A DNA stretch of 64,000 nucleotides from Mantamonas sphyraenae STR306. Lineage: Eukaryota > Protista > CRuMs. Below are positions 3,959 to 14,700 of the stretch, one piece after another. Below the pieces are notes generated by a model. It saw nothing but the letters and a program-made list of their open reading frames with translations, was not told the DNA's origin and did no database searches. Each line of letters begins with the position of its first letter. Positions within the stretch are counted from its first letter, which is position 1. The translations under genes were made by a program, and so were the position numbers. The stretch spans positions 62,001 through 126,000 of the forward strand of contig JAPMXV010000009.1 of NCBI GenBank assembly GCA_026936335.1. Direction: 5' to 3'.

Positions 3959-4836
3959 TCATCGTCGCTTGCGCTTCTCGATGAGCGGCAGCTCGATGCC
4001 AGGCCCCATGGTGGAAGAGATAAGGACCTGCTTGACGTAGGCCCCCTTGGCGGTGCTGCTCTGAGGTTTGCTGTTGCCGATAAGGTTGACAAAGTGGGTA
4101 ATGTTGTCCAGGAGCTGGTCGTCCGAGTGCTCCAGGTTGCCCACAGAGGCCTTGACCATGGATTCCCTGTTGCAGCGGTACTCCAGCTGGTCGCCAGCCT
4201 TGAAGGTGCCGACGGCGGCGCCAATGTCGTTTGTGACCGTGCCCAGCTTGGCGTTGGGCATGAGACCACGCGGACCAAGCACACGGCCCAGTTTGGACAC
4301 GAGAGGCATCATGTCCGGTGTAGCCAGGCAACGCTGAAAGTCAAGGTTGCCGGCCTGGATTTGTTCGACCAGATCTTCGGCGCCAACCACGTCCGCGCCA
4401 GCCTGGCGAGCCTGCTCCGCCAGCTCGTCGCGAGCAAAGACAGCCACGCGTGTGCTCTTGCCGATGCCATGGGGCAGAGACATGATGCCACGCACCTCGT
4501 GCACCTTGCCCTTCTCCAGGCCGAGCTGCATGCTCACTTCCACGCTCTCGCGGAAATTGGCACGTGCGTGGGCACGCATCACACGCACAGCTTCCGGCAG
4601 GGCGTCCTGTACAATAGGCGACACCATGTCGTACTGCAACACCCGCCCGCACATGCCTGGGGTGTCAGTTGCGAGGCCCGGCACTCGGTCGCCACTTTCC
4701 ACCGTCGCTTCGCAGCTGTTCCCGCGTCGCCTACCTTGCCAGCATCGGCCTCCTGCTGCACCATGCGCGTCCACGTGGACAGTTGCCGCCTGTGCACCAC
4801 TCCATGCGTGCGCTTTCCGGCTGTTCGGGCAAACAT
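3959..4836 (-). CDS. MRPL1: Mitochondrial (bacterial-type) ribosomal protein uL1
   Basis: LPHGIGK, GADVVG and LGRVLGPRGLMPNAKLGTV motifs. Exon 1 (4836-4735) encodes the presequence-like MFARTAGKRTHGVVHRRQLST; intron 4734-4634. Confidence 0.93.
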
Positions 4837-5033
4837 GGCAGTCGTTGGGTTGGTAAAGGACACGCTCCAAGTCCAGTCCGCTCCCAGCATGCATGCGAGG
4901 GTGGACCGGTCACCGTGGACCAGGAAGGAAACAAACCAGGAAGAGTGTATTGCGGGCGCGGCTTCTGCCTTTCTCAAACTCGATCCACGATCTCGTGGAG
5001 CGGAGTCTGCCGCGAGGGAGCGCCTTGTTTTCG

Positions 5034-9459: not shown

Positions 9460-11686
9460 TCACAACAAACACACATCGTTGTCACAATACTTCTCGCCCG
9501 TGGCATCCTGCCTTCCGGTCGTCTTGATGTCCAGCGGCTTGAGCTTGGAGAGCATGTCGCCGTAGCGTTCAGCGTCAATCTCCTCATAGGGCATCTGCGG
9601 GTAGGCACCTGCGTCGATGTTGGGCAGGAGGGAGACCCCCTTGAGGTGATACTGGAAGTAGTCTAGGGCCTGTGCGATGTGTGGGCCCTCGCGCTCGGGG
9701 TCAAACGTCACCGTGCAGCTCACCTGATTGTCTGCCCAGTGGCGTTGCAGGAACGCTGCCAGACTCAACTGCTCCCACATGCTCACGTCACGCAGGGTGC
9801 GCACGCCCACGCCACAGTCCACAGGGAAGGAGACCACGCTCGTGGTGTCCGGTGCATCCACAGCCGGTTCAACCTCGTAGCCAGATTCAAGAAGCGGCCT
9901 GAGCAGCTCGCTGGCGTTGTTCATGCGCAGGCGGCGGATGTAGTACCTTGACTGAGGATAGTGCATGCCTGGGGTGGCGCCTGCTAGAAGCGACACCGTT
10001 CCGCTCGGTTTGATGCTTGTGCGCTTGATTGACTCGGGTACGCCAAAGCGTGACGACAGCGAGCGGTCACAGTCGCCAACCACGTCGTATCCTTCTTCAC
10101 ACCATTGGCGCAGCTGTTCCAGGCCGTGCTGCGAGATAAACTGTGCCAGACCAGACATGCTGCAGCCAATCCGCCTGTTGCGTGCCATCACGGCGTTTGT
10201 TTCCTCCCAGTGGGTGAGCCCAAGCGTCACCGTCTTTGCATACTCCAACGCCAGCGCGAGGGTCTCTTTGTACTCTTGCAACGAGTCGTGGCGGTTGGGA
10301 AACGTTTCCACCAGGCAGCACAACTCGTACGACTCCAGCGTCTGTTCCAGACAAGGATTGCCTCCGCGTGCACGCTCGTCTTTCCAATCCTCCTCGCGCC
10401 CATTCATACGCGAGTGCGCACGCATGTTGTCCAGCCACGCAAACCCGGGCTCGCCATTTGTGCAGATGTTCTTCACCAGCGGTGCGTAATCCATGCCCAA
10501 ACGCGCAAACACGCTGTTGTTACTGGTCCAGCCGTACTCCATCCGGTGTGGATTCACCTCGTAGTTCTTCAGATTGGCAAACGCCTCGTCGTCGGGCTCG
10601 CCAAAGGCGATTTCTGCCGTCTGCCGCACGTTGCCCGTCACAATGCACTTGCCAATCAGGTTCATGATATCTACAATCGTAGTCGATGACAACGTGCGCC
10701 CCTCCTGGGCGTCCAGCACGCGCTCCAGGTGGACGTGCAGGTTGTGCAAGGACTGCGGGCCCGCTGCCTCGCCACCAAAGCCTCGGATGGGCTCGCCGCG
10801 TGCACGGATGTTGGAATAGTCAAAACGCACAGGTGTGCGTGCAACCTCGTGCGTGTTGAGGTACGCATTCAACAATTGTGCGACGGAAGAGACCCAACCC
10901 TCGCGCGAGTCTGCAATCTGCACCATCTGCGCTGGTTTGCTACGGTCCACACCGTGTACACGCACTGCCTCGCCAGCTCCCTTTGTGTCGAAGCCCACGC
11001 CCACGCCCAGCATGGCCATGTCCATGAGAAAGGTGAACGGTTTGTGCGCCTCGCCTTGCTCCGCCAGGGCTCGCACGCCATCCGTGCTCACAAACGCACA
11101 ATTGTTCAGGGCAGCATACATGTGACGCTCTGTGGTCAGTGCACTGCCCATGGCCCACAGGCCCCTGCCCGGTGGCAGGAATTTCATGTGGAAAATGCGA
11201 TCGTACATCGCCTGCGCAGCCTCCTGCTTCTCGTGAACATCAAACGCTTTGCCAGCGCCCTCCATCCACTCCTGCTGCATCTGGTACGTGCCGTTCACCA
11301 CACGCTCCACCGTTTCGTGCCTTTAGCGTGGTCCGCGCAATTGTGTCAGCGTCCTGGGTCCGTGCGCGTCGGGCGATGTTCTCGGGAACCGGCCTCCGCC
11401 GGCATCTTTCCGTCTGCACTCACCACTCCTCGTTGCGGCCGTCTGGACGCACGCGACTGTATGTGCGCCTGTACACCAGTTCGCCCAACCCGTTGAACCC
11501 AAATGGTGGCGACTCTGCTGCATAGGACGACACAAACGAGTCGTCGAGGCGAAAGCCTCCTCGCTCGCCCACCGCTGCATCGCTCAAGCCACGCACACAA
11601 TCGACTAGTGCACGTGCAACGTATCCACTACTCGAGGAGTTGCCTGTGCGAGCCAGCGAACGTCCTGCTCCGGCACGTGCAAACAT
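9460..11686 (-). CDS. nrdJ: Class II (adenosylcobalamin-dependent) ribonucleotide reductase, monomeric RTPR/NrdJm type, with presequence-like N-terminus
   Basis: FLPPGRGLW, NNCAF, GGNPCLEQ (thiyl-radical Cys), ELCCLVE, IKPSGTVS, WADNQVSCT and C-terminal CDNDVC. Intron 11423-11321 splits the W codon of EEW|HETVERVVNG. Confidence 0.96.
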
Positions 11687-11700
11687 ATCTGGAGCAAGCA

Positions 11701-14700
11701 ATGGCTTGGCGTATCCGGGGGGGTCCGCAGGTCACCATCCAGCTCATCCTCACGGTGTTCCTGCTGCTCCTTCTGCTCCATCTCCTGCTCACAAGGCTGT
11801 ACAAGTGGTGGATGCGCTACCAGGGTGAGTGTGTGTCCACGATTCACTCCATGACCATCCTGCACGGGGCTCCCAAGACTGACGTTAGAATTCTCGCGCG
11901 CGACAGATCGGCTGCGAGTCATCCTACACAGCGAACAGCTGCATTCACTGTACGAACGTATGCACTCACGTGGGATTACTTCACAGAGCCTGGCTGTGCT
12001 CACGCGCGCAGAGCAGTTGCACCTGCTGCACGAAACTTGGGGTTTGGACGAAGCCAAGGCGCGCCGCGTCGTCGCCCAACTCGTCAACGCCGGCGACGAG
12101 CCACAGGATGCTCGCAAACGCACACACACCACGGATTCTGCACATTCAACCCAATCCGCAGCCAATCGCTCACGCATGGCTCGTCATGCAGACGCCTCGG
12201 TGCTTGGCACGCTTCCGTGGCAGGCGGCCGCTGCGCAACGCAACCAGCCAAGCCGGCCCGACCGACCCTTTGCCCTCGGTCACCCGCCACCTGTCCACCC
12301 TCTGCTGCCTCACATGTACATTCAACCTGCAGGCATTTCCTCTGGCTGGCAATACGCTCTAAATGCCTCGGCCACAGAGTGGTGCCGGCCGCTCAATGCC
12401 TTGCTCAACACCCGCCGCGGCGGTGCCTTGTTCCTCGGCGTGGACCCACACACACACCATGTGCGAGGCCTTCCTCTGCCGGATATCACCCAAAAAGCCC
12501 TGTGCACACACATTCAATCGCTCCTTGACACACACTGTCCTACGGCCGTGCCTCGCCCCTGCGTCGGAGCGCCCCAGACACGAATCCATCTGGCTCTGCA
12601 CCCTGTCAAGCTGCCTCAATTCACCCTCGTGTGTGGTTCGCAGACCTTGGGCTTGGTGTCACACACGGTGGTGCTGCACAACCAACAATGGTCCCACACG
12701 GTGGCCGAGTGCACAGAGATTGCCGAGCGCAACTTTGTCCCCGGCGCGTCGTCGACACCATCGTCATCATCGTCGTCCTCCTCGCGATCAGCTGCCCCTG
12801 TATCTACCCCTGAGTTTGAGCTGCTGAACAAGAACGGAGTGCGTGTGGTGACCAATGCGCAGGCGTTGGAACGCGACATCCTCTTTGCTGTGCCCGTTCT
12901 CTCCGACCTGTCCTCCGAACAGGCCACCCAACTGCGTGCCCACATGCTCCAAGTCATCCAATCGTATGGATTGGACCCATCCTCGCTCCCTCTGGCTCCT
13001 GTGGCGGCCACAATGGCCGTCGACGACCACAACGCATTGCCACTGTATGTTTTGGAGCTCACAGTGCGGGGCAACGAGGCCCATGAAGCGCCTGTACACA
13101 TTCTACACACACACACATACCATCTTCAGGGACATTCAGTTGCACCCATCGACTCGTCCTCCCTGTACAGCGCCATTCAACGCGGATGCACACTTGCCGC
13201 TTCCCTTCCCCATTCCCAACAACAGACCAGCACCACCAGCCGTGTGTACATCCACACCCACACACGCGTACAACCAATGCATCAGATTGTGATGGCCAGG
13301 CCCACAGATGCCAGGATTGACATGGCGTCGGGATCTGGACAAACAGTGGATCCGGAGCGCTTGGCTCACAGTGTGGCACACGCCATGAGCGCCCTGCTCA
13401 ATGATGCCCTTCTGCACAAACGCACCCTTCGCTCGCGTGCCGTCCTCCTTGGCGTGGTTTCGGCCGACGACGGGCGCAGTGCACGAGCACTTGGCTTGGC
13501 CTTGGATTCCACACAGATGGATGCGCTGCAACAGCACAGCGAGACTCTGTTGCAACGCATGGTACCTAGCAATGCGCAAGCTGTGGTCGATGTCACCTGC
13601 TATCCTGTATCCTGTCCTGTGGCACATCTGGTGCACGATGACTGCGACGGGGTGGGCGTGTGCGTTCTGCGCATTGTCGACGACAGCTGCCTCGACGCCA
13701 TCGTCGACGCAGTCGACACTGTGTTGCATGGAACTCCGGCTCTGCGTACAGAGCTTTGGATGGACAGCGTGCAACGCCACGGCTACGCAAGCGCGTGCGT
13801 GCTGAGGCTGGCCAACGAGGAGAACAGCAGCAAATGGGACGCTTCTGCCGGCGTTTCGTCATCTTCATCGTCATCCCCACCGACAACGACTCAAACTCGT
13901 CTGGCCGTGGCTGTGGCTCCGACCGGCGGCGTCGGGGATCAACAGGCACAGCAAATGGTGCGTGAACGTCTGCGAAGGGTTTGTACAGAGTGGACGGACG
14001 CCTGTGTTCTCGAAACAGTGCCTCTGGATGCGGTGCAATTTGCCCCGCGCTGGATCTTCACCGTGCGGCTGGAAGAGGCACGCTGGCCAAACGATCAACG
14101 CGCATTGCTTAGTGTGCACCCGCCGCAGGCGTTTGGGTTGTCAACCGTCACTGCCGCCACGATGGAAGATCCGAGCGAAAGTTTGGTCAGCTTGCATGCC
14201 AGAGACGTGCAAGCACGTATCCGTGACTGCGCTCACGTGCGCACGCAGCATTTGCTCGAAACCGAGCTCAAAGACGAAACACAGGCTCTATCCGAGGCGA
14301 TGCATGATGTGTGTGTGAACACGCATGGACAGGCACACAGGCTACTGGTGCGTGTGGACGCCAGGAGTGATGCCGATGTGTCTCTCGCTGCGCACGCGTT
14401 GGCGCGACGGCTTGCTGGACCTGGGTCCATGGCGACAGTGGTGCCCTGTTTTGGCACGCTGGACACGAGCACAGCCATGCTGCAAGCCATCCACACGCTG
14501 CTGCCGGATGCGACGGCTGAGGCACCCGCCACGGAACACCAGCTCAGCGTGGAGTTTGGGCTGGCCATGCGCATGGCCACAACAAATCACACCCCGCAAG
14601 GCGGAGGAGAAGAGACACAGATGGCGCCTGTGGTGCTGTTCACAAACGTGCCATCGACGTGGACCAGGGAACACTTTGAAGTTATGATGGCCAACACGGA

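Follow-up and report, generated by a model that had tools for sequence, protein, structure and literature searches.

Why do eukaryotes that already have a class I ribonucleotide reductase (RNR) also keep a class II enzyme? No role has been agreed for it. Adenosylcobalamin (AdoCbl), on which the class II enzyme depends, is made in mitochondria. Class II RNR (RNR-II) has been assumed to be cytosolic (PMC11439496), and with AdoCbl in the mitochondria this poses a problem of supply. The role of the Dictyostelium enzyme has been called enigmatic (PMC3605638). Eukaryotic class II RNRs are known from oomycetes, early fungi, Fonticula, haptophytes, chlorarachniophytes, Anaeramoeba, Monosiga, Dictyostelium and Euglena (PMC3019208, PMC8085122, PMC11439496, PMC11550330), and in Euglena, Dictyostelium, Monosiga, Phytophthora, early fungi, haptophytes and Anaeramoeba the pattern is that of a ribonucleoside-triphosphate reductase (RTPR) of bacterial derivation beside a class I RNR (PMC3019208, PMC3605638, PMC8085122, PMC11439496, PMC11550330). 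The gene described here shares this pattern. It lies in a 64,000-nucleotide stretch of the genome of the CRuMs protist Mantamonas sphyraenae STR306 (contig JAPMXV010000009.1, positions 62,001 to 126,000; hereafter the window), and it differs from the described eukaryotic enzymes in that the leader of its product bears the mitochondrial signature of its own genome. We propose, from sequence comparison, that this RNR is probably imported into mitochondria, where it would use locally made AdoCbl and reduce nucleoside triphosphates (NTPs) to deoxynucleoside triphosphates (dNTPs) without oxygen.

By profile and residue comparison, the window gene is an intact monomeric class II RNR of the RTPR/NrdJm type (TIGR02505, EC 1.17.4.2). 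In monomeric class II enzymes, an insertion domain substitutes for the dimer interface and provides the specificity site. The profile of this domain (PF21995, RNR-II_ins_dom) scores 52.8 bits here against a cut-off of 27, the N-terminal RNR_Alpha profile (PF17975) scores 43.2 and 71.8 bits for the two exons, which were searched separately, and the RNR barrel (PF02867) scores 39.7 bits C-terminal of RNR_Alpha (Pfam). Exon 2 alone reaches 332.7 bits with the RTPR model TIGR02505, whose curated equivalog cut-off is 340.05, and just 54.7 bits with the dimeric NrdJ model (NCBIfam). Exon 2 holds the ten-stranded barrel with the thiyl-radical residue Cys411.

The only solved relative is the RTPR of Lactobacillus leichmannii (1L1L), archetype of the monomeric class II RNRs, which exon 2 matches with an E value of 2.4e-87; the match runs in three aligned stretches and is not one of close identity. 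Every catalytic residue and the C-terminal cysteine pair correspond between the two proteins. In 1L1L, C408 is the thiyl-radical cysteine, N406 and E410 accompany it on the finger loop, and C119 and C419 make up the redox-active pair. By alignment count, residues C162, N409, C411, E413 and C422 are equivalent to 1L1L residues C119, N406, C408, E410 and C419, and their columns are invariant in 13 of 13 aligned sequences (the residue checks, like the tree below, used exon 2 only). The CxxxxC tail of RTPR is the electron shuttle from thioredoxin. Here it comprises C700, invariant in all 13 sequences, and C705, present in 11 of them; the two are five residues apart and situated 3 residues from the C-terminus. 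The product is predicted to be a functional, AdoCbl-dependent ribonucleoside-triphosphate reductase. A pseudogene is ruled out by the intact frame and the full set of catalytic residues. The Mantamonas enzyme differs from that of L. leichmannii in its 41 additional N-terminal residues of presequence type and in being encoded by a nuclear gene with an intron.

How secure is the gene model? Unspliced, the frame of exon 1 runs for 88 codons to an in-frame TGA at 11422-11420, and exon 2, which ends with the TAA at 9460, is in a different frame. The context TG/GTGAGTGCAG...CGCTAAAG/G defines a GT-AG intron at 11423..11321 that splits the Trp88 codon, and its removal joins ...RPDGRNEEW to HETVERVVNGT in a product of 707 residues. 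In the Pfam scan, residues 47-87 of exon 1 cover positions 1-41 of the RNR_Alpha profile (PF17975) and residues 2-59 of exon 2 cover positions 44-101. The profile positions thus run from 41 to 44 over the intron, so that splicing yields a single unbroken domain; moreover, the junction NEEW/HETVERVVNGT aligns to homologues without a gap. The splice and the gene structure are supported by this homology. The start codon, at 11686, is the first ATG past an in-frame stop 15 codons upstream. Met1 is the sole in-frame Met of exon 1, hence the sole Met before the core, and the next one lies in exon 2, about 55 residues into the conserved core; therefore, barring an unseen upstream exon, a functional enzyme must start at Met1. 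The initial annotation had described a nuclear, intron-bearing monomeric class II RNR with all of its catalytic cysteine motifs, and both statements hold: the first on the 103-nt GT-AG intron, the continuity of RNR_Alpha over the splice and the TIGR02505 and 1L1L matches, the second on the invariant 1L1L-equivalent residues and the presence of C700 and C705. Bacterial contamination is ruled out by the intron, by the eukaryotic genes around it on the 314-kb contig and by the eukaryote-type leader. The GC content of the window is 59.3%. On the other side of the start codon, a divergent gene model (with a transmembrane segment and a donor GTGAGTG at about 11827) has its ATG 14 bp from that of the RNR (window 11686-11701); either the coding exon of this neighbour is overlapped by 5' untranslated regions, or one of the two models is wrong.

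The leader is the part of the protein that sets it apart. Bacterial-type homologues begin at window residue 42, where their M-E-K-F-T-L aligns to G-G-G-F-R-L, and residues 1-41 have no prokaryotic counterpart in the homologue alignment. These residues therefore lie outside the conserved core, as a leader added in eukaryotes. The leader begins MFARAGAGR; its first 30 residues comprise 4 Arg or Lys, 1 Asp or Glu, and 16 Ser, Thr, Ala or Gly, and its first acidic residue is residue 29, while bacterial RTPR N-termini have an acidic residue at position 2. These composition values fall inside the range of the in-genome set of matrix proteins. So does the maximal helical moment of 0.74, although the moment alone does not discriminate, the bacterial N-terminus scoring 0.72. 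A motif of the R-3 type, RGL/S, occupies residues 32-35; this is a short pattern, and RGL is also present in the leaders of methylmalonyl-CoA mutase (MCM) and IDH3. Taken as a whole, the leader is a predicted mitochondrial presequence, and import into the matrix has good predictive support.

The first four residues of the leader recur in this genome (25,061,354 bases in 78 contigs were searched). MMAB starts MFARVSAGR, MeaB/MMAA starts MFARSSGGR, and MCM has a short first exon that starts MFARVSKHQ and runs into the conserved N-terminal motif; the leaders of all three are 30-40 residues long. The window itself provides a fourth example in mitochondrial uL1, whose first exon, MFARTAGKR, reads on the minus strand from 4836, with a bacterial-type L1 body in the open reading frame (ORF) 3959..4894. 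The first acidic residue stands at position 29 in uL1, MMAB and a ClpP-like ORF and at position 30 in MeaB. By contrast with these, neither cytosolic control has such a leader: in class I R1 the ATP-cone stands at the very N-terminus, and MetH lacks an MFAR leader in the exon carrying its N-terminal core. Genome-wide, the DNA pattern encoding MFAR occurs 224 times, as against 89 for a reversed control. We sampled the first 60 sites in contig order, read the ORF from each ATG and scanned 40 of them against Pfam. Family names were obtained for 16, and 10 of these are classically mitochondrial (Table 1). Two others are internal Met residues of the nuclear proteins Tra1 and Suf, where the Pfam match begins mid-profile, and the remaining four (TIG, SPRY, RasGAP and TPR) could not be placed by compartment; one further sampled ORF resembles ClpP by eye. 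MFAR seems to be a consensus, peculiar to this species, for the start of mitochondrial presequences. Examples of MFAR-start ORFs are L004:1384 (+), L005:3389 (-), L006, window 4836 (-) and L008-L067. In a repeated family on contigs C12 and C17 (L042, L050 and L054), a very basic leader opens with MFARRVSKRGG..., and Pfam matches nothing within residues 1-250. The initial annotation had noted a leader of about 40 acid-poor residues, mitochondrial in type and similar to that of uL1. Its length is 41 residues. Its MFAR start and its first acidic residue at 29, a signature common to MMAB, MeaB and MCM, support the predicted type, both leaders do begin MFAR, and the alignment places the RNR leader outside the core.

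Table 1. Parts of the RNR gene in the window, and sampled MFAR-start ORFs that belong to mitochondrial families.
Feature	Position in window	Strand	Description and basis
RNR leader, residues 1-41	11564..11686	minus	predicted mitochondrial presequence; homologue alignment and in-genome leader comparison
RNR exon 1, 263 nt	11424..11686	minus	leader and 46 core residues of RNR_Alpha; PF17975
RNR intron, 103 nt, phase 2	11321..11423	minus	GT-AG; donor GTGAGTG, acceptor CTAAAG; profile continuity and homologue alignment
RNR exon 2, 1861 nt including TAA stop	9460..11320	minus	rest of RNR_Alpha, insertion domain, barrel, redox tail
Sampled MFAR ORF			M3 peptidase
Sampled MFAR ORF			IF2-like GTPase, 290-residue N-region
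Sampled MFAR ORF			UbiA prenyltransferase
Sampled MFAR ORF			3-hydroxyacyl-CoA dehydrogenase
Sampled MFAR ORF			Suc_Fer-like, Aim32-like
Sampled MFAR ORF			Bax1-I, GHITM-like, 190-residue N-region
Sampled MFAR ORF			isocitrate dehydrogenase
Sampled MFAR ORF			mitochondrial carrier
Sampled MFAR ORF			MRS2
Sampled MFAR ORF			bacterial-type S9, 160-residue N-extension

The same genome holds several partner genes for this proposal. A check for class I RNR, MMAB and MCM found all three; MeaB and MetH are present as well, and class I RNR is represented by R1 and two copies of R2. This R1 has no close kin among the proteins searched (65-70% identity at most), consistent with an orphan lineage. The genome search found no class III RNR. 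The class I genes are clustered on contig C43, with R1 at 541002-542579 and R2 at 559427-560197 (+) and 562741-563511 (-); the two R2 copies have identical scores, are inverted with respect to one another with about 2.5 kb between them, and lie 17 kb from R1.

Where did the enzyme come from, and do its relatives carry similar leaders? The best named match is from the oomycete Lagenidium giganteum, at 63% identity; hundreds of metagenomic proteins of 656-673 residues match at about 60-61%, and the CRuMs protist Rigifila ramosa is also among the matches. A second homologue search added many oomycetes, Cafeteria and long forms. The initial annotation called the distribution of class II RNR in eukaryotes patchy; the enzyme does occur there, but that wording under-describes its spread through oomycetes, fungi, haptophytes and more. 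The enzyme as such is a further member of a known, patchy eukaryotic family, and the predicted targeting is the new part. A tree of 47 rows places the window protein on a long branch (1.04 changes per site), where its neighbours are Rigifila, a marine bacterial-type clade and further rows of eukaryote type. The phylogeny is compatible with a clade of Mantamonas and Rigifila, which is not rejected (approximately unbiased test, p 0.185), but the backbone is unresolved. When genome contigs were scanned for a donor, a single close relative emerged, a Proteobacteria metagenome-assembled genome at 58%. The gene is ultimately of bacterial origin, and it later gained a spliceosomal intron and its predicted 41-residue mitochondrial presequence. 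The closest bacterial-type RTPR (P0094, on the marine metagenome contigs L078-L080) has a replication and repair context: genes for RecA, a 5'-3' exonuclease and a DnaB-type helicase immediately precede it, one for a TonB-dependent receptor follows it, and these neighbours do not name the donor taxon. A separate observation concerns the released protein sets: the published clean-up of the Mantamonas transcriptome removed proteins whose best match was prokaryotic at an identity of at least 50% (PMC10492846), and the RNR, about 60% identical to bacterial RTPRs, could thus be missing from them.

Among the homologues, 28 are extended at the N-terminus by at least 15 residues and 166 are unextended (fewer than 8 residues), with zero extension in 144. 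We applied a simple presequence rule, in which the first 25 residues are free of acidic residues and include at least three Arg or Lys. Twelve of the 28 extended homologues pass (Rigifila, Lagenidium, two Aphanomyces and eight unnamed sequences), as against none of the 166 unextended bacterial-type RTPRs. Judged by these N-termini, gain of a leader is recurrent or ancient, yet not universal. Five RTPR homologues (P0261, P0264, P0266, P0267 and P0271, from Aphanomyces and unnamed eukaryotes) start like presequences and have, ahead of the catalytic core, a conserved acidic module with the motif HGF-x-DDF-x-PLF; neither the window protein nor bacteria have this module.

We propose the following sequence of events. 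The precursor would enter the matrix, and the leader would be cut, plausibly after Leu34. The enzyme would then meet AdoCbl where MMAB makes it, beside MeaB and MCM, and would convert NTPs directly to dNTPs independently of oxygen, its C-terminal cysteine pair relaying electrons from a thiol system of the matrix. Nuclear replication would be served by the cytosolic class I R1/R2 enzyme. The initial annotation had suggested an oxygen-independent dNTP supply of this kind, drawing on the local AdoCbl pool; it is partly supported, in that the targeting is well predicted. The RNR resembles the mitochondrial AdoCbl branch (MMAB, MMAA/MeaB and MCM) in its dependence on AdoCbl and in its MFAR-type leader, and we conjecture that the cofactor is handed over from MMAB to the RTPR; to our knowledge, RNR is not a recognized client of this branch in any organism. 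We infer import, the cleavage site, the cofactor supply, the reductant and the role in mitochondrial DNA precursor supply alike.

Several observations weigh against matrix import. The length of the branch leading to the window protein could mean a functional shift. Although the genome has 29 thioredoxin-fold matches, none of them could be modelled as a small thioredoxin that bears a clear leader. MFAR also heads ORFs that are not assigned to mitochondria, including the multi-copy family and the TPR protein described above, and the true-start status of the sampled sites was judged from composition and domain position. The leaders of Phytophthora and its close relatives, 44-57 residues long, start MAPTTS..., are rich in Ser and Thr, contain acidic residues and are not presequence-like; targeting is therefore not a property of the family. 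RNR-II is called cytosolic in the literature, with no test cited (PMC11439496). Finally, exon 1 and the start codon are modelled from homology and the MFAR signature.

How do the alternatives fare in the light of these points? One is that import is incomplete: some of a single product would reach the matrix, the rest would stay in the cytosol, and in both places it would back up class I RNR independently of oxygen. Such a division would suit the presence of one gene, with one possible start, and a leader that is just moderately basic (4 Arg or Lys in 30 residues), in a host that dwells in sediment (PMC10492846) and whose class I RNR needs oxygen. However, neither a second in-frame start nor an alternative exon is visible, leaders like this one stand on exclusive matrix proteins (MCM and MMAB, for example), and the cytosolic share would still require AdoCbl, a matrix product; we regard dual localization as unlikely. 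Equally improbable, in our judgement, is an enzyme that is wholly cytosolic, its extension a non-targeting appendage and its MFAR start a coincidence of composition. The Phytophthora extensions, the review-level statement of a cytosolic RNR-II (PMC11439496) and the MFAR ORFs without an assigned compartment all accord with this reading, but coincidence is difficult to reconcile with an MFAR start on four of four independently chosen matrix proteins, with the share of mitochondrial families among the Pfam-named MFAR ORFs that are not internal (10 of 14), or with the absence of such a leader from cytosolic R1 and MetH. There is, lastly, a slight chance that the 5' end is mis-modelled and that the mRNA uses another first exon or start, leaving the leader untranslated, given a start and splice drawn from homology, a possible acceptor-like CAG 3 nt upstream of the ATG and the start codon of the divergent neighbour 14 bp away; against this, the leader and the core from residue 42 are continuous in one exon, Met1 holds the position described above and true starts with MFAR recur in this genome.

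Import of the RNR into mitochondria is thus the reading that we favour, and this predicted targeting contradicts the published assumption of a cytosolic RNR-II (PMC11439496). Our literature search, of partial coverage, found no paper proposing organelle targeting of a class II RNR. Animal mitochondria obtain their dNTPs through cytosolic R1 with p53R2, salvage kinases and carriers, so that precursors are imported or salvaged. The need is the same in both cases, namely dNTPs for mitochondrial DNA outside S phase, but a de novo reductase resident in the matrix would be another solution to it. More tentatively, we suggest that the Mantamonas matrix may house a resident, oxygen-independent, AdoCbl-dependent RNR, fed by the MMAB/MeaB branch, that lets the organelle make dNTPs de novo for itself, and that the same arrangement may exist in several unrelated eukaryotes with presequence-like RTPR leaders (Rigifila, Lagenidium, Aphanomyces and unnamed environmental lineages).

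If matrix residence is correct, it would explain both the persistence of class II RNR beside class I and the access of the enzyme to AdoCbl, and this would be, as far as we know, the first de novo ribonucleotide reductase to reside in an organelle. It would be relevant to the upkeep of mitochondrial DNA precursor pools and to life at low oxygen. Furthermore, in this deep-branching lineage the MFAR signature can serve in practice as a genome-specific marker from which to predict the mitochondrial proteome.

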